Position numbers and translations under genes: made by a program
Shown: positions 53,173 through 63,986 of the stretch, in pieces
Layout: every line of letters begins with the position of its first letter
Position numbering within the stretch: the first letter of the stretch is position 1
Assembly (NCBI GenBank): GCA_002104945.1
Contig: MCFH01000045.1
Location: 62,001-126,000 of the forward strand
Direction: 5' to 3'
Length of the DNA: 64,000 nt
From: Piromyces finnis finn
Lineage: Eukaryota > Fungi > Neocallimastigomycota
The notes under the pieces: generated by a model
Told to the model about the DNA's origin: nothing
Databases searched by the model: none
The model's input: only the letters and a program-made list of their open reading frames with translations

Positions 53173-55368
53173 ATAATTACTTAATATTAAAGCAAAACAA
53201 GGTAATAATTTGAAATAAATGAAAATATTAAAATACACTTAATTATTAAAACTATCATTTAATATTTTATCTAAATATGCATTATGCTATTCATAATCCA
53301 TATTCATTGATTTATAATGAAAATGATAATAGTTAAAATAACTATTAATTAATTGTTACTATTATCTATTATCTATTTCTTATCCAAATCATTTCAATAA
53401 TAATATATAATGTTATATTTATCATTATAATAGATAAATATATATTTTTTTTTTCTATCCTGATATACTTTATTAATAATAATAATGTAAAAATAATTAA
53501 TAAAAAGTATATATATTAATAAAAAATTAACTAATTTCAAATAAGAATTATACTTACTCCACTTTATAAAAGATCTTTGTTTAATTTTTAAAATAATTAT
53601 CTAGATAATAACAGATATTTAATATTAAAGAATATATAATTGTTTTTATAATAAGCATATTCCGTTTTTGTATAACCTATCTTATTACCTTATTACTAAC
53701 ACAATTTTTTAAAAAGCAATAAAGATATTTCAAAAAATATATTTAGCATATTTATTTAATACTATATTGATATATCTATTTAATTTATTATTTTTTATAT
53801 TTTTCTTTTTTTTATATTATGTTTTTAGTATAATAATCACATATTATATCATATATATCATATATATTATTTTATTATTAATATTTAATAATTATTATAA
53901 TAAAAATTTAGTTTTATAAATGTGGTAAGAGTACTTTTATGTATATTCATATATAGTTAAGCGTATTGTTATTAATTATTAAAACTAATAGTAAAAATTT
54001 GTGGATTATTTTCCTTTATCTTTTCTATTTGTCAATCTTATATAAAAAAATAATAAAATAAAATAAAATAAAATAAAGTATTATAACAAACTATAATTAA
54101 TAAGTAATATTAATAAAATATAAATTTAAATTAAAATTAGTACTTTATTATAATTTATTATAAAAAAAAAAAAACAATATAGGTAGTATAAAATTGAAAA
54201 TATTTCATTTCATTTACTTTTTATAGTAGTACAAAAAGTTATTCATATTTTTAGAGACAAACTGATTTACTATGGATTATCCATTTTCATGAAGAATAAA
54301 TGAAATTAATGTTTTATATAATTATACCTTTTTATACATACTTATTTTATTCATACCTTTCTTTTATTACTTATAAAAAATGCTCTATTGAAATTCCTTA
54401 TTCTATTTTTCTTTTTTTCATTTATGGTATTTTCTAGTTGTGGCTATAAAAATGATTTAAAGTCACATTATCATGTATATCATGTATAGACAAATAAAAA
54501 GCTTCTTTTATTATAACAAATGGTTTTATTCAATGCATTCCTATCTATTCAAATAATTGTTTAAATAATTGGATTTAGTAGTTTATTATTATAAATAGTT
54601 CATTATCGTATTTTCTAATTATTCTATTACCAAAAAAAAAAAGTAAAATCATTCTTTATATTTTCTATCTATTTACTTTTTTAAATTTGAAAATTTTATT
54701 TAATAATAAAAGAAAGTACATTAATTCTTTTGAAAAATTTTTAATATATGTAATAAAATCTAGTAAATATAATCTAATATATAATGATAATATATTTGAT
54801 GGATTGATTTTTTAATAATTAAAAATTTTAAAATAAAATTAAATATTTAATTTTATGTATATTTTTACACATAAAAAAAAAAGATATAAATACTAACAGT
54901 AACACTTTTACACTCTTCTTTTACTAAATAGCATTTTATTATAGAATAACTAGAAAATAAAAATAATAATAAGGTATACAATTTACAAATATGATAGTAT
55001 AGTATAAAAAATAAATATATTATTTTATAATAAGAAGTTCTTTTAAAAAAAAAAAACTTTTATATGAAATGTAAAATGTCAATATTTACTTCTTAAACAT
55101 TCATAATTTTATTTTGTTATGTATTTTTCTACATTACCTAATTTAAAAAAAAAAAAAAAAAAGTTCAATTTGAGAAATTTATATAAACATTATTTTTTAT
55201 TATTATTATTTATTAATTTATTTGAATAATTAACAAATTAACAATTAAATTTCAAAAAAATTCTTACAACTAATAGTGTATTTATTTTCAACAATATGAA
55301 ATTAGAATTGAAAATACTGTCTTAGTATAAACCTTGAAAAAAGTAATAAAAAAAAAACATAAAACATA

Positions 55369-57933
55369 ATGTCTGTTGAATTATTTCGAAACCAACCTGA
55401 TTCAAGTTCTTCTTCATTAATACCATTAAAATGGATAGGCGCAAGAGTTGAAAATCGAAATATTCCTGAATGGTTATCTGGTGTATACTTACAAATTGGA
55501 CCAGGGTAATTAATATAATAGTAATAACAATAAGAATAACTGAAATAAAATGAAATGTTATTTAAAATTTCAGTTTTTTTTAAAATGAAAATGAAAATTA
55601 ATAATAATAATTAATATATTTATTGTATCATTTTCAATATTTATTATAATTGAATTTATGTAAAGTTTTTTTGATATTAATGCCAAGGGGGAAACTACAA
55701 CAAAACAATTTTCTCAATCTCTTGTACAATTGAAAATTGTTCACTTTAAGCATTGGTTTGATGGTAATAATAAATAAAATGTTTTTTTAACACTGTAACT
55801 TTGAAATCACTTAAAATCTTATATATTGATATATAATTTTAAAAATACTAAGAATAAATTATTTATTAAATAATTTAATATTTCAATTAATATATAATCT
55901 AATATTTTTATCCAATTTTATTATATATATATCAATTTGAAAAATAAAAAAAAAAAAAAAGGTTTATCACATATTCATAAATTAGAATTACAAGGTGGAA
56001 CAAACGAAGCTTTATGGAGTCATAAAAGTATTTCTAAATCATATGAAAAGAAAATTAGTGAAACAGCTATAATTGATCATACTACTTTTGGACAAATAGC
56101 AATCGAAAATCATGAAGTTTCAACTACTGTGATAGATGCTTTCAAATTCCAAAATGATCAAAATAATGTTAAATATCAAGAAGAAACTTATAATAATAAT
56201 TTAGGTATTCAAACTGTTCATTATAACGATAAAGATCATATTGTTGTTACAGGTTATTCCCCTATTATCGAAGAAATTGATTTAAAAGATTACACCTCAA
56301 CTAAGATTGGAAATTTAATTCATTCGTCTTTCTACCCATCTTCTCATTATATTATTACACCACATAAATGTTATGATACAAAAACAAATGAGCTCTTTTC
56401 CATGGTTTTAGAAGTAGGTAAAGTTTCTTCATCTTTTTATATTCTTCGTACTGGATTCCCAAGTTCATATTTACCAGGAAAAAGTCAACCTGAAACTATC
56501 TTATTCTCAACTATTCCAAATGTAAGAGTTGGATATAATCATACTTTTGCAATTACTCCACACTTTATTAGTAAGTATTTAATTAATTTATATCAATTTA
56601 AATATAGAATTATTTTCTAGAAACAAAGTACTAATGAAAAAATTTAAATATAATTAAATCAATAATAATAAAAATATATATATATAATAAAAATATTATT
56701 TTTTTTTTAGTTATCATAAATTGCCCATATCATGCTGGTACTATTGGTAGTGGGTTAAAGTTAGCCTTAAATCAAGGATCTATTCAAAAAACGATGAAAT
56801 TCTCAGAAGATAAAGATGAAAGTACTCTTTGTTATATTATTTCAAGAGAAAATGGAAACTTAATTAAAACTTTTGAAAGTGCTGGTTTCTTCTTCTTAAA
56901 TATAGTCAATTCATTTGAAGGAAGTGAATATGAAGAAGTAGATCCAGATGGTAAACCAGAAAAGAAATATGATATTTATATTGATGTTATTGCTTATTCT
57001 GATGCTAAAATATTAAGTGTCTTTGAAATAGACCAATTACGTTCTTCAAACAATAAACAAAATACCATCAATAGAGATGTTTGGTCAAATACTATAAGAA
57101 GATATTGCTTACCAGGTGTTTGCCCAAGTCAAGGAGTACCACTCAATTCATCATCTGGTGTTCCTTATTGGGAACAAGTTAAAGAAAAAGTAGAAAATCC
57201 AAAATGGTTTGTCAACTCACTTGTACAACCATTCAAAAAGTTATACTACACTGCTTCTGGTAATCCAATGCCAGAAGATAATAATAATAATAATTCCAAT
57301 AATAGTCTTAAGCCAAGTTCTGATAATAGTTCAAAAAGAGCTAGTACTAGCTCATTAGATATTAATAGTTTAAATAGTAAGCTTAATGAAAGTGATTTGA
57401 ATATTCGTTTTGAATATCCAGCTTCCTTCCAACATCTAAGTAACACTACTATAGAATTTCCATGTATTAATAAGGAATATAACTATAGAGATTACCGATA
57501 TGTCTATGGTTTATTCCATCCAAAAAAAGATAAATCTTCTTTCACTCATTTAATTAAAATTGATATTCAAACCATGAGAGTTATTAAATTTAATCCAACA
57601 GATATAACAGCTAATCCATATAATGATGAAGGTGATATTACTATTCCAATGACAAATGAAAAAGTAATGATTATACCAGCAGGTACTCCAACTTTCATAC
57701 CAAGACCTTCTAATTCTACTGAGGATAATGTTGAAAAAGATTCAGATATTGATATTAAGGAAGACGATGGAGCCCTTATTGCACCATTCTTTGATTTATA
57801 TAATAAGAGAAGTCTTATTATTGTTATTGATGCTAAGACCTTTACAGAGATTGGTCGAATAAACTTACCAAACAATGAATTTATGCCATTTGGAAGTCAA
57901 AGTACTTTCTGTCATGCATCAAGTGAAAATTAA
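55369..57933 (+). CDS. Carotenoid cleavage oxygenase (RPE65 family) fold protein, 4 exons, 688 aa; probably non-catalytic
   Basis: Exons 55369-55505, 55666-55763, 55962-56570 and 56711-57933 splice in frame. Motifs IPEWLSG..IGPG, HWFDG, TPHKCYD, YNHTFAIT, IEFPCIN, YRYVYG, EDDGALI, DAKTFTEIGR and PFG. Confidence 0.88.
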
Positions 57934-58275
57934 ATGGGATAAATAATAATAAAAGCCATATGTATTATTATGTATTCTTAATTATCATCATCATAAATAA
58001 TAATTTTTTTTTTTTATCTTTCTTTAGTATCTTTCAAATTTATAATATTATTTTAATAGAAAATAAAAAGTATAAATAATATTTATAATTATGTTGTATT
58101 TCTTTTTTACTATTATCTTTTTTTTTTTTTTAATAGCATAATCATTATTTTTATATTTTAATTATATCATACCAAATAAATTTTATTTTATTAAAACTTT
58201 CCAAGACTTTGCCATTTCAATTTAAAAATATTAAATAAAAACATTTAAAAATCTAACCCAGTTATTTTTATATAA

Positions 58276-58532: not shown

Positions 58533-61500
58533 TTATTTGTATTTATATAATAAACTATCTCTAAATATTTTCATTTTATTTTTATTCAAGTATTTAGTAA
58601 AACCATCTGCTAAATTTTCTTCTGATTTTATATATTCTAGACTGATTTTATTTTCTTTAATTAATTCTCTTACTTTATGGTACTTAATATCAATATGTTT
58701 TGACTTTGGATTAATCGTTTCATTATTTGCGTTGTAAATAGTTGCTTGATTATCAATATTGATTTTTAAGCATTCTTCCTTTATTTTTAATTCACTAAAA
58801 ATATTTCTATACCACAGAGCTTGCTTTGAGCATTCACAAAGTCCATAATATTCTGCTTCGGCGGTTGAAGTTGATACACATTTTTGCAGTTTTGAGTACC
58901 AGCTTGTTGGTCCATTTCCCAATAAAAATACAAATCCAGTGGTAGATTTTCTTGTTTCTTCATCTCCCCCATAGTCTGAATCTACAAAAATCTTCAAATT
59001 TAAGTTTCTTTCAAAACGGATTCCATAATGAGGATTTTCTTTCAGATATTTGAATATTTGTAATACATTCTTCCAATTTTGGATAGTAGGATTTTGTGAG
59101 AACCTAGATGCTTTGGTTACTGAAAATAAGATATCTGGACGAGTACCTATGGCTAAATATAAAAGACTTCCTATTGCAGCTCTATAAGTAGTAGGGTCAA
59201 AAGGCTGATTGAGTTGTTCATCATTCTTGATTGGTGTAGTTGTCTTTGATCCTCTGCAGTTTTCTAAACCAAATTTGTGTAATATATCCTTTAAATACCT
59301 TTCTTGATGTAACAAATACCCATCTTTTAACGTTTCTACTTTGATTCCTATGATGAAATTTGCATCACCAACATCCGTGATAACATATTTCTCTTTAATT
59401 AATTTAATAGTTTTATCTATTTCTTCCTTTTTACCAGTTATTAGGATGTCATCAACATATATTCCAACTAAACATACTAATTTATTGTTTTTGGTCTTTA
59501 TAAATATGCATGGTTCGCTAACTAATTTCTGAAATCCTAGTTCAATGAGAGTATTGCTGATGTTGTTATTCCATTCTCTTGCTGCTTGTTTTAAGCCATA
59601 TAATGCTTTATTTAATTTCCATAATCCTTTTTTATACATTTTATCTCCTTCAGGTGCTTTCATATATATATCTTCCTTTAAATCTGCATACAAATATGCG
59701 GCCTTAACATCTAATTGATGGATTTTATAGTTATTAATTGCAGCTATTCCTATTAGGATTCTTAATGAGTCTTGTTTTAGAGTAGGAGAAAAGGTCTCAT
59801 TGTAGTCTTCTCCATATTCTTGTGTAAAACCTCTGGCTACAAGTCTAGCTTTGTATTTTTCTATCTCACCAGTGCTATTCCTTTTTATCTTAAATACCCA
59901 TCTTGAATCAATAATATTGGCGTCTTCTGGAACTTCATCTATTCTTTTGAACACTTTTCTTTCTTTCATATTTAGCAATTCGGCTTCTATTGCTTTTATC
60001 CACTTATCCTTATCTTTTCTTTTAAATATATCATTATAGGAATTTGGCTCCTTGATTTGTGCTATAGTTAGCGCCACTTCCTTAATTTTCTTCTTTTCTG
60101 GTTCATGTTCATGTGGCTTACTAAATTTTTCTTTTATGACATCTTCACTTGGAACAAGTTTCCGCTTTCTTGGGAATTTTTCTTCCTTTGGTGGATGATT
60201 TTCATTTAATTTAAAATTTTTATTGGATTTTAATTTTCTATTTAGATTTCTCTTATTCAAAAAATTTTGTTTTGATAATAACTTTTTCTTATCAAAAAAT
60301 TTTTTCTTAGATTTATCTTTATTGATTGGATCTTTAATTTCATTTTTATTTTTTAAATTTCTCAAATTATATTCCTTTTTATTTTGATTATTTAAATTAC
60401 TTTCTTTTTCATCAGAAATATTTTTAAATTTGGACTTTTCTTCAGGAATATTGATATTTTCTTTATTCAAATTTCTTCTTATTTCATTCTCATTAATAGG
60501 TATGTAATTTTTCTTATAATATTCTTCATTCTTATAATTTACTTTTACATTTGAATAATTATTTTCTATTTCTTTTCTATTATTTTTATTTATATTATTT
60601 TTGACACTCTCAATATTTTCAAAATCAATTTTCTTTCTTGTTCCTAAATCAATGTCAGGACTCAGGATATTTAAAAAATCATTATTGTCAATTTCTCCAG
60701 TTAAATCATTTATCTCCATTTCTGATGGTGTTTTTAATACTTCTTCAATTAATTCATTTTTATTTACAATGTCTGAATTTTCTTCTATAAAATAAACATT
60801 TCCTTTTGCATTCAGGTATTTATTATTCCTTTTATTATCCTTTGATATATTTGAATTGTCTTTACTGTTTATATTTTTATTTTTCTTGTCGTCATTTCTC
60901 TTTATATTCACTTCTTTAATTTCACAAATTTCAGTTTCGTCAGCACTATTATATTTTAAATTATTATATTTTAAATTATTTTCTTCCAAGGTAAAGTTAT
61001 TTATATTGCCGTCGTTACTTCCTGAAATGTCATTATTGTTTTCTTTTTCTTTATTGGTTTCACTTACAGATTCCATTGAAGTACTTATTTTAATTTCTTT
61101 ATTTTCTTCCATTTCTTCAATTTTCTGGTAATTATTTTTGTTCAAACGTTCTTTTTTCTTTTCTTTTAGTTTAATATAGTCTAAGAGATTTAAGTCTTCT
61201 TCTTCTGAGTCTTCTATATTCATATTACTATCATTAGTGTCCTCGCAGACTTGCATAAAACTTTCAGAACTATTATTTTTTTCTTTATTTAATAGTGACG
61301 TGAGCTTATCCAGCTTTTCTTCTATATTTCTAAATTTTTCTTCATAATTTACTTCTTTTAAGTCTTCTTTATTACTAGTTTTATCATTGAGTGTTTCTAG
61401 GTTTTCATTCATTAATTTATCATTTTCATTTGAAATGTCCTTTTCTTTTTTGTCTTTATTGTTATTGTTTTCATTTTCTTTATCATACATATAATTAAAG

Positions 61501-63986
61501 TTCCTTACTTGAAAAGTTTCTGTATCTTGACTATATGTTTCATTATTATTTTCTTTTTCTAAATTATAATTGTAGTCACCAGGTTCTTCTTCTAAAAAAC
61601 CTACGACTCTTTTCACTTTAATTTTCCTTGATTTTATGTCGAATATTCTGTATCCTACTGAAGATTCATCATATCCGATAAAGATTCCCTCCTTAGTTTT
61701 GTCTTGAAATTTTGGAATGTTACTGTCATCTAAATAATACACTTTACATCCAAATACTCTTAAATTTTTATAATCAACTTTTCTGTTGTACATTAATTCA
61801 AATGGTATTTCACCATTAATTCCACTGTGCGGAACTCGATTATGAACATAGTTCGCTGTTTTCACAGCATCTTCCCAAAAGCGACGACATAACCTTGCGT
61901 CCATTAACATTGCAGTAGCAGTTTTTATTAACTTTCCATTGAATCTTTCTGCTCTTCCATTCTGCTCCGGATTTCCAGGGACGGTGAATTGTTGAGTTAT
62001 TCCATATTCGTTACATAACTCCTTGAAGTTATTAGAAGTGAATTCAGTTCCATTATCGCTTCTAAGATATTTTACTTTGGATGATAATTCATTAGTAGTT
62101 TTATTCAGCCAATTTCCAAATTCTTTGAAAACATCACTTTTATTCTTGACAAATATTACCCATCCATATCGACTGTAATCATCTAAGATACTTAAAAAGT
62201 ATACGTTGTCATGAATTGATGGTGTGATTGGACCTACCAAATCGATGTGTACTAGTTCCAAAACACTTGATGCTCTACTATCTGACCTTTTATGAGGGAT
62301 TTCTTTCATTTTGCTTCTCATGCATATTGTACAATTGTGAATATTGTTCTTTTCATCATTATTGTTGAAATTCAGATGCCCTATTCTTCTATGCCAGTAT
62401 TCACCATTGTTTCGTACATTATCGCACATTGAGTAATTATTAACTACATTACCTTCTTTGATGTACAAATTGAATACATCATATTCATTTGCTTTAACTT
62501 CGTATACATTATCTGTTTTCTTATCTTTTATATATGCAAATACATTATTGTTCTTCTCATCAAAGATTATTTGGTAGCCACTTTTAACTAACTTGGCAAC
62601 AGAAATTAAATTTCGTTTTACATCTGGGATGTACATTACATCTTCTAATTTTATTGGTTCTTCATTAATAGATCCATTTACTTCACCCATATGTGTTGAC
62701 TTTGTAGTCGCTCCATTTGCATAATTGATTGGTTCTACATGTTCAAAAACATTTTTGAGAATTCCTATATCTTTGGTAATATGATTAGAAGCACCAGAAT
62801 CTAAAGTCCATGTAGTAAAACTTGTAGGTACATTTTCACAAGATACGTAATTGCATGATTTATTATTACATTCATCATTGTTATTGTCAAATAATGTATT
62901 GTAATCAACTGTAAACAAATCTTGATATCCAACTTCTGGTTCAAAGTCTTCAGTGGTTTGTTTATTTACTATTTCACCTGTTGCTAAAAATGCTTCCTTG
63001 CCTTTATTTTTCTCTTTTCTTAGCCTTCTTGTAACTTCTTCTGAAAGTTCTTTTTGAATACGACATTGTTTTACAGTATGTCCTTTTTGATGACAAAAAT
63101 AACATGTAATGTTTTGTTTATTTTTGTTATTCCAATTTCTTTCTTCATTGGACTTTTCTTTTCCTTTATTTGTATTTTTATTATGATTATTACTTTGTTT
63201 GTTGCGGTAGTATTTAGTACTTTCCTTTCTTTTATCACCTTTGTAACTACCTTCAACACTAAAGATATGTCTAATTCCGAAGGTTTCAGATTTCTCTTTC
63301 GGATCAAATTTGTTCATCTTATCTATCATTCTTGCTGTGTCCTTTTTGCATTCTTCCCAGTCTTCATGCTTAAGGACTGTGACTTTCCTATATTTTTCTG
63401 GTAAGGCTTGATACAGTAAACCAATTTTTTCTTCATCATCTATTTTCACATTTAGTTGTTCTAACTTATTAAAGTTGGAATTTAACTTATTTACAAATCT
63501 TGAGAAACTTTCTTTCGGGTCGTATTTTAAGGAGTTTGTTTCCTTAATAAGCCTATTCTTTCTTTCTATTTTATCCCCTAAATAAATGTCTTCTAATAGT
63601 TTCCACATTTCGTAGCTTGTTAAAGACCTATCTTGGATATCTTGTTGGCAGTTTGGGCCTAAAGTATACCTAATTAAAAATTGGATATTCCTATCTGTTT
63701 TTAAGTCATCTTCGGTTACGTTCTTATCATAGTAGGTATTGATTTCAAAAGGTGCCTTTAGATATTCTTCTCCGTCGATATCCATTCCTTCGTCACTTTT
63801 GATCTTTGGGGTTTTGTTTTCATCAACCCAATCTTCAAGACCATAATAATTTAAAATATTCCTCATAAACATTTGCCACGTTATGAAATTTTTATTGTTC
63901 AATTCATAAGTGACCTTTCCTAGCATAACGGTAGGATCGAATATAGGAATTGATCCAGTATCTCCGTTAGATTTTCTTTTTGACAT
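58533..63986 (-). CDS. Copia gag-pol polyprotein, intact, 1817 aa
   Basis: Zinc knuckle CYFCHQKGHTVKQC; protease LDSGASNH; WHRRIGH..CTIC; integrase HIDLVGP / LRSDNGTEF / NGRAER; RT ARLVARGFTQ, QLDVKAAYL, LYGLKQA, YVDD; RNase H DSD, AEAEY, IDNQA, ADGFTK. Confidence 0.97.
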   Translation of the reverse strand: MSKRKSNGDTGSIPIFDPTVMLGKVTYELNNKNFITWQMFMRNILNYYGLEDWVDENKTPKIKSDEGMDIDGEEYLKAPFEINTYYDKNVTEDDLKTDRNIQFLIRYTLGPNCQQDIQDRSLTSYEMWKLLEDIYLGDKIERKNRLIKETNSLKYDPKESFSRFVNKLNSNFNKLEQLNVKIDDEEKIGLLYQALPEKYRKVTVLKHEDWEECKKDTARMIDKMNKFDPKEKSETFGIRHIFSVEGSYKGDKRKESTKYYRNKQSNNHNKNTNKGKEKSNEERNWNNKNKQNITCYFCHQKGHTVKQCRIQKELSEEVTRRLRKEKNKGKEAFLATGEIVNKQTTEDFEPEVGYQDLFTVDYNTLFDNNNDECNNKSCNYVSCENVPTSFTTWTLDSGASNHITKDIGILKNVFEHVEPINYANGATTKSTHMGEVNGSINEEPIKLEDVMYIPDVKRNLISVAKLVKSGYQIIFDEKNNNVFAYIKDKKTDNVYEVKANEYDVFNLYIKEGNVVNNYSMCDNVRNNGEYWHRRIGHLNFNNNDEKNNIHNCTICMRSKMKEIPHKRSDSRASSVLELVHIDLVGPITPSIHDNVYFLSILDDYSRYGWVIFVKNKSDVFKEFGNWLNKTTNELSSKVKYLRSDNGTEFTSNNFKELCNEYGITQQFTVPGNPEQNGRAERFNGKLIKTATAMLMDARLCRRFWEDAVKTANYVHNRVPHSGINGEIPFELMYNRKVDYKNLRVFGCKVYYLDDSNIPKFQDKTKEGIFIGYDESSVGYRIFDIKSRKIKVKRVVGFLEEEPGDYNYNLEKENNNETYSQDTETFQVRNFNYMYDKENENNNNKDKKEKDISNENDKLMNENLETLNDKTSNKEDLKEVNYEEKFRNIEEKLDKLTSLLNKEKNNSSESFMQVCEDTNDSNMNIEDSEEEDLNLLDYIKLKEKKKERLNKNNYQKIEEMEENKEIKISTSMESVSETNKEKENNNDISGSNDGNINNFTLEENNLKYNNLKYNSADETEICEIKEVNIKRNDDKKNKNINSKDNSNISKDNKRNNKYLNAKGNVYFIEENSDIVNKNELIEEVLKTPSEMEINDLTGEIDNNDFLNILSPDIDLGTRKKIDFENIESVKNNINKNNRKEIENNYSNVKVNYKNEEYYKKNYIPINENEIRRNLNKENINIPEEKSKFKNISDEKESNLNNQNKKEYNLRNLKNKNEIKDPINKDKSKKKFFDKKKLLSKQNFLNKRNLNRKLKSNKNFKLNENHPPKEEKFPRKRKLVPSEDVIKEKFSKPHEHEPEKKKIKEVALTIAQIKEPNSYNDIFKRKDKDKWIKAIEAELLNMKERKVFKRIDEVPEDANIIDSRWVFKIKRNSTGEIEKYKARLVARGFTQEYGEDYNETFSPTLKQDSLRILIGIAAINNYKIHQLDVKAAYLYADLKEDIYMKAPEGDKMYKKGLWKLNKALYGLKQAAREWNNNISNTLIELGFQKLVSEPCIFIKTKNNKLVCLVGIYVDDILITGKKEEIDKTIKLIKEKYVITDVGDANFIIGIKVETLKDGYLLHQERYLKDILHKFGLENCRGSKTTTPIKNDEQLNQPFDPTTYRAAIGSLLYLAIGTRPDILFSVTKASRFSQNPTIQNWKNVLQIFKYLKENPHYGIRFERNLNLKIFVDSDYGGDEETRKSTTGFVFLLGNGPTSWYSKLQKCVSTSTAEAEYYGLCECSKQALWYRNIFSELKIKEECLKINIDNQATIYNANNETINPKSKHIDIKYHKVRELIKENKISLEYIKSEENLADGFTKYLNKNKMKIFRDSLLYKYK

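Follow-up and report, generated by a model that had tools for sequence, protein, structure and literature searches.

Can a gene that encodes the fold of a carotenoid cleavage oxygenase still specify an oxygenase once two of the four histidines that hold the catalytic iron have been replaced? This question is raised by a gene on the + strand of a 64,000-nucleotide stretch of the Piromyces finnis genome (positions 62,001 to 126,000 of contig MCFH01000045.1, assembly GCA_002104945.1), hereafter called the window, in which the coding region extends from 55369 to 57933. A first-pass annotation, made from the letters of the sequence, had described a carotenoid-oxygenase-fold gene with a partly lost metal site and an intact, maintained four-exon frame, and these descriptions are borne out below. 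The product comprises 688 amino acids, and it is very unlikely, judging from its sequence, that it binds Fe(II) in the manner of the family or cleaves double bonds with O2. The probable answer is that it is a maintained pseudoenzyme, in which the propeller is kept, the four-His/three-Glu iron centre is lost and the role is now a non-oxygenase one.

Replacement of the iron ligands

Whole-protein analyses were performed with the public P. finnis protein BCR36DRAFT_414984 (P0001), which is labelled 'Carotenoid oxygenase' in UniRef, and the window sequence was entered exon by exon. Exon 4 is 100% identical to this protein in a word-index search, and the total length is likewise 688 residues. At the four iron-ligand positions, His1 and His2 are present as H213 (CAT, 56363-65) and H272 (CAT, 56540-42), His3 is replaced by N345 (AAT, 56899-901) and His4 by Q678 (CAA, 57898-900). 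The first-pass annotation had placed all four codons at exactly these coordinates, and the alignment to relatives in the family PF03055 (RPE65) agrees with its assignments. Two of the three second-shell glutamates are also lost. The Glu3 position, in the PSEP motif, is occupied by Thr607 (ACT, 57685-87), a loss noticed earlier, and the Glu1 position by Tyr177 (56255-57), a further loss that had escaped the first reading; Glu2 is kept as E530 (57454-56). Accordingly, neither the four iron-ligating histidines nor the three second-shell acidic residues of a competent cleavage dioxygenase are complete in this protein. According to two papers cited as references 47 and 48 of PMC13734108, mutating key residues of RPE65 is said to abolish its activity, and conserved histidines are reportedly key to that of BCO1.

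The substitutions lie within well-aligned motifs. In alignments to the archaeal enzyme NdCCD (6vcf), FFAFHHVNAFE pairs with FFFLNIVNSFE and PFGFHG pairs with PFGSQS. A MAFFT alignment of the 142 nearest full-length family representatives gives HHHH in the four columns for 124 of them, and HHNQ for P. finnis. The replacements would be an artefact of alignment if four histidines reached the metal position in three dimensions, and a local ambiguity does exist: in one HMMER profile alignment the residues around His1 are displaced by two, whereas H213 falls on the ligand position both in MAFFT and when the H-x-x-x-D spacing is read without gaps. This doubt about register leaves the conclusion unaffected, since the His1 position is itself not conserved, being Phe in six of ten orthologues. 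At His3 and His4, Asn and Gln are found consistently, whether by phmmer, by profile hmmsearch or in two MAFFT alignments, within the unmistakable motifs FxLNIVNSFE and PFGSQS, and most orthologues carry a single histidine among the four positions. The nearby His683 of the STFCH sequence, which the first-pass annotation had thought an unlikely substitute, falls in a column occupied by His, Thr, Asn or Ser among orthologues and thus provides no conserved replacement ligand. We regard an artefact as extremely improbable.

The same replacements recur throughout the anaerobic fungi, for which ten full-length proteins with 58–82% identity formed the orthologue set. His2 is His, His3 is Asn and His4 is Gln in all ten, and fragments covering the N345 and Q678 positions agree on Asn and Gln. 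His1 is His in four of the ten (P. finnis and an Anaeromyces-like group) and Phe in the other six, so that FHNQ is the most common pattern. Exchanging the His1 codon CAT (window 56363-56365) for the Phe codons TTC or TTT seen in other anaerobic fungi is a two-base change. The His/Phe switch requires at least two events on the orthologue tree, with His in P. finnis and Phe in its nearest relative.

Preservation of the propeller scaffold

The whole P. finnis protein scores 188 bits for PF03055, whose curated threshold is 27, and single exons suffice for a match (exon 4, 5.6e-31 and 108.6 bits; exon 3, 6.4e-5). By these sequence matches, it is a clear member of the superfamily by descent. The best solved relative is NdCCD of Nitrosotalea devanaterra (PDB 6VCF, 6VCG and 6VCH), found at 3.3e-18 from exon 4 and at 9.4e-73 from an orthologue profile. 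The 17 solved sequences retrieved with that profile at E <= 1e-5 comprise NdCCD, NinaB, BCMO-1/2, RPE65, BCOLg, ACO and a carotenoid 9,10-dioxygenase, and no lignostilbene or stilbene oxygenase is among them. A link to lignin or stilbenes, which the first-pass annotation had entertained, thus finds no backing in these relatives, all of which are carotenoid, apocarotenoid or retinoid enzymes.

An AlphaFold2 model built from 149 sequences has a mean predicted local distance difference test score (pLDDT) of 81.9 and a predicted template modelling (TM) score of 0.84; a model from 11 sequences was discarded (pLDDT 43.8). The sole part predicted to be disordered, with pLDDT below 50, is an Asn/Ser-rich insert at approximately residues 444-514. 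In a Foldseek search with the predicted model, all 50 best matches are structures of the carotenoid/retinoid oxygenase family, headed by NdCCD 6vcg with an E-value of 2.7e-30 and a target-normalised TM score of 0.84. These results indicate that the P. finnis protein keeps the seven-bladed propeller scaffold, as modelled. The propeller and the order of its motifs are common to NdCCD and the fungal protein. NdCCD itself, however, has a full four-His centre (FHHVN and GFHG), binds Fe or Co, is 472 residues long, is only about 20% identical and is devoid of the fungal inserts (approximately residues 52-70, 434-517 and 577-600 of the P. finnis protein). A similar relation holds for the retinoid isomerohydrolase RPE65 (PDB 3FSN and others), with which the predicted fold is shared at Foldseek TM scores of 0.78-0.80; in RPE65 the four histidines, the three glutamates and the iron needed for activity are all kept, whereas the P. 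finnis protein is without that set.

Residues conserved across the family are mostly kept outside the ligand positions. These comprise P33, W35, G38, N156, D217, Y270, N348, D373 and R412, as well as E530, P532, K564, E632, D633, G635 and R664. The motif HWFDG at the end of exon 2, which over 88% of canonical members possess, is also kept. The pattern of retained and replaced residues indicates that the scaffold has been preserved while the iron centre has been taken apart.

Expression and purifying selection

Loss of catalytic residues may also mark a gene in decay. According to this explanation, the locus would be a relic, orphaned after loss of the carotenoid/retinal pathway, functionless and drifting towards a pseudogene. 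The missing ligands and the variability of some positions would fit such a history, as would the absence of the pathway partners from the order (PMC9616733). The transcripts argue otherwise. The 688-residue frame is intact, and each of four public RNA runs from three studies contains one spliced contig of 2.1-2.3 kb, extending over approximately 55300-57990, from which all three introns have been cut out at precisely the sites predicted. Full-length orthologues exist in three named genera and several further lineages. Eight of them are intronless 2.0-2.5 kb Joint Genome Institute (JGI) contigs, each with a complete uninterrupted open reading frame, and we infer these contigs to be transcripts.

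Ratios of nonsynonymous to synonymous substitution rates (dN/dS), calculated by the Nei-Gojobori method with the P. finnis exons entered as two separate rows, fall between 0.16 and 0.40 in 44 of 44 pairs; given dS of 0.3-1.0 between genera and a strong AT and codon bias, these values are approximate, though far below 1. Together with the retained scaffold motifs, these observations have already largely refuted the relic explanation, which we consider highly improbable. Neutral decay without expression, the outcome that the first-pass annotation had named as speaking against its reading, was not seen. The gene is maintained under purifying selection across anaerobic fungi, transcribed and spliced, with no decay.

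Phylogenetic position and recurrent ligand loss

Exhaustive searching of 1.84 billion representatives with a profile retrieved 2361 family members. Only three proteins exceed 300 bits, all of them from the anaerobic-fungus clade, and the next best scores 207 bits. The named sources of orthologues are Piromyces finnis, Piromyces sp. E2, Anaeromyces robustus, Neocallimastix lanati and N. californiae; the HHNQ/FHNQ version is restricted to Neocallimastigomycota. A very AT-coded match (P0085) was considered as a second paralogue and rejected, as it sits on a compact, prokaryote-like contig.

A site-heterogeneous IQ-TREE phylogeny of 50 sequences places the P. finnis protein within a clade supported at 99/97, in which every named member is a fungus or an aphelid. 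Within it, the anaerobic-fungus clade is supported at 100/100 on a very long stem, of 1.69 changes per site; the order of the deeper branches stays unsettled. Horizontal transfer, suggested by the archaeal origin of the best solved relative, was rejected in view of this nesting, and the sequences indicate a vertically inherited fungal family member. A FastTree analysis had paired Cladochytrium with the anaerobic-fungus clade as its sister (support 94). This pairing was set aside, as IQ-TREE left it unresolved and flagged long-branch attraction.

The 99/97 clade also contains canonical oxygenases of zoosporic fungi and aphelids (Allomyces KNE59794.1, Blastocladiella KAI9179838.1, Synchytrium TPX34660.1 and Amoeboaphelidium KAI3655890.1), which have HHHH and second shells of D/E-E-E. 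Their common clade makes it probable that they share ancestry with the P. finnis gene. The lineages of these canonical oxygenases have carotenoid- or retinal-based light sensing (PMC9616733). The HHHH set is likewise found in Sorochytrium, Syncephalis, Dimargaris, Tieghemiomyces and Ambispora.

Of the 142 nearest relatives, 18 carry substitutions in the His columns, and the nearest of these are early-diverging fungi, as judged by names looked up. Six in the fungal clade have lost one to four histidines: Cladochytrium replicatum (KAI8808129.1, His1-4 KLAV), Phlyctochytrium (KAI9095566.1, RHNY), Geranomyces variabilis (KAJ3182953.1, IHSH), Rhizophlyctis rosea (KAJ3032836.1, RHKH), Radiomyces (KAI8379059.1, NNHH) and Umbelopsis (GAB5592338.1, NHHR). 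Single replacements are seen in Blyttiomyces helicus (VHHH), Mortierella (HHHN) and Bifiguratus (HHHS). Pairwise alignments place the losses inside the motifs as genuine substitutions, with Phlyctochytrium, for example, reading FALNMVNSFE. This protein shares LN(M/I)VNS at His3 with the P. finnis protein, and the Cladochytrium protein has a long insert and, at Glu1, a Gly-Tyr in common with it. The aerobic degenerate homologues nevertheless differ from the P. finnis protein in their substitution patterns, are 23-24% identical to it, and have losses that map as separate events; at least four changes between full and degenerate His sets are needed on the tree. By this count, ligand loss has recurred no fewer than four times in the fungal clade, including aerobic chytrids and Mucoromycota.

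These independent losses in aerobic relatives mean that anaerobiosis is not the specific cause. The first-pass annotation had tied the loss of the metal site to life without oxygen, and this part of its reading is weakened and, in that form, not supported. A separate clade (P0100, P0115, P0127, P0120 and P0151) combines N-terminal hydrophobic segments resembling membrane anchors with the degenerate His sets QRHH, QRNK, YRHR and HHNH. Ligand loss in the superfamily may extend beyond the fungi.

Constraint on the former metal site

A protein that has lost its iron could still be an enzyme. In the main rival explanation, a remodelled centre (His272, Asn345, Gln678 and Glu530, perhaps joined by His213) or else a novel Cys/His cluster would hold another metal or none, and an O2-independent reaction such as isomerisation, hydrolysis or hydration would be carried out on a lipophilic substrate. 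RPE65 provides a precedent for non-O2-consuming chemistry on this scaffold, with iron acting as a Lewis acid. The purifying selection described above is in favour of this explanation, and the length of the anaerobic-fungus stem suggests a functional shift and not mere loss. Furthermore, C286, C414, C533, C682, H279 and H289 are near-invariant in the anaerobic-fungus clade and rare at those columns in canonical enzymes. H272, N345, Q678 and E530 are invariant in all ten orthologues.

This invariance, however, does not stand out from the rest of the protein. Across the orthologues, four of the seven positions in the first and second shells do not vary, against a background of 42% invariant columns, which indicates that the old site is under no special constraint. 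The His1 position switches between His and Phe, and the second shell varies freely, with Tyr or Asn at Glu1 and Thr, Ala or Cys at Glu3; only Glu2 is kept. Full-text literature searches turned up no family member described as iron-less or as a pseudoenzyme, and none is known to work without the four-His iron. On balance, we consider a remodelled enzyme unlikely and favour the maintained pseudoenzyme.

Certain points weigh against the pseudoenzyme. Asn, Gln, His and Glu are able in principle to ligate other metals, and the invariance of N345, Q678, H272 and E530 would in principle allow a remodelled metal site. The role of ligand binder, reasoned by analogy, is a guess. The approximate nature of the dN/dS values, noted above, also belongs here.

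Gene structure and neighbouring sequence

The gene region is very AT-rich, with a GC content of 25-32% in exons and 11-20% in intergenic sequence. Four exons are separated by three introns that all follow the GT..AG rule, and all features of the gene are on the + strand. The 5' untranslated region (UTR) covers at least 55300..55368, as spliced contigs of runs X1-X3 start at or before 55300. Exon 1 (55369..55505) starts at Met1 and ends two bases into the codon for Gly46; its junction, at 55504/55665 (GT..AG, cut +1), is found in four runs. Intron 1 (55506..55665, 160 nt) and intron 2 (55764..55961, 198 nt) are each absent from one contig in each of the four runs. Between them lies exon 2 (55666..55763), supported by the sequence and the spliced contigs and ending in HWFDG. 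At the 3' end of intron 2 (55945-55961), a long A-run without a pyrimidine tract precedes the AG acceptor, and splicing is precise in all four runs. Exon 3 (55962..56570) carries Tyr177, His213 and His272, as assigned from the PF03055 match, alignments and codons. For intron 3 (56571..56710, 140 nt), the contig pieces stop at 56570 and restart at 56712 with adjacent record coordinates, and the splice sites are taken from the sequence. Exon 4, including the stop codon (56711..57933), carries Asn345, Glu530, Thr607 and Gln678, on the basis of its PF03055 match and the NdCCD alignment, and also encodes the disordered Asn/Ser-rich insert. The 3' UTR covers at least 57934..57990, since contigs from both X1 and X2 extend to 57990.

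Two bases of run X3 depart from the window sequence: 56392 G>A is synonymous (E222), and 56438 T>C gives Y238H, His being the residue in most orthologues. These differences look like strain polymorphism. Directly downstream, on the - strand, an uninterrupted 1817-aa Ty1/copia-type retrotransposon polyprotein occupies 58533-63986, with copia gag, Pol beta-barrel, integrase core, SH3-like and RVT_2 domains.

A proposed history and its implications

Galindo et al. (2022) reported that Neocallimastigales are without all fungal photoreceptor genes, including CyclOp, and without phytoene synthase and phytoene dehydrogenase, with 'carotenoid oxygenase' kept (PMC9616733). Of the three enzymes of the retinal pathway, the carotenoid oxygenase is the only one kept in Neocallimastigales, Spizellomycetales and G. 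prolifera; the same paper makes no comment on the active site (PMC9616733). We found degenerate sites in two of these groups, the orders Neocallimastigales and Spizellomycetales. Loss of the carotenoid/retinal pathway fits better as a correlate of ligand loss than anaerobiosis does.

The sequence of events that we favour is as follows. Carotenoid/retinal-based light sensing would have been lost, freeing the oxygenase from catalytic constraint, so that the trigger would not have been oxygen loss as such. The propeller that was kept, with its substrate tunnel, would then have taken on an O2-independent role, most plausibly the binding of a hydrophobic isoprenoid or lipid ligand, or scaffolding. 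Extended to the clade, this view would hold that early-diverging fungi repeatedly turned a retinal-forming oxygenase into an iron-free propeller after light sensing was lost, and that gut fungi fixed one version with a new O2-independent job, such as sensing, carrying or sequestering an isoprenoid or lipid, for example plant-derived carotenoids. We offer this broader scenario tentatively and hold it to be doubtful as a whole.

The findings bear on how such genes are read. Databases name them 'carotenoid oxygenase', and the survey counted the gene as a retained enzyme of the retinal pathway (PMC9616733); given the degenerate sites, the presence of the gene is no sign of a capacity to make retinal or apocarotenoids. 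A four-His iron centre counts as a hallmark of all carotenoid cleavage oxygenases. If the broader scenario holds true, the anaerobic-fungus version would be the first non-catalytic lineage to be described in the carotenoid oxygenase superfamily. A clade that is conserved and expressed yet lacks the iron centre, together with the parallel losses, would show a second, non-oxygenase use of the propeller, and the clade would offer a natural system for learning what this scaffold does without its metal.

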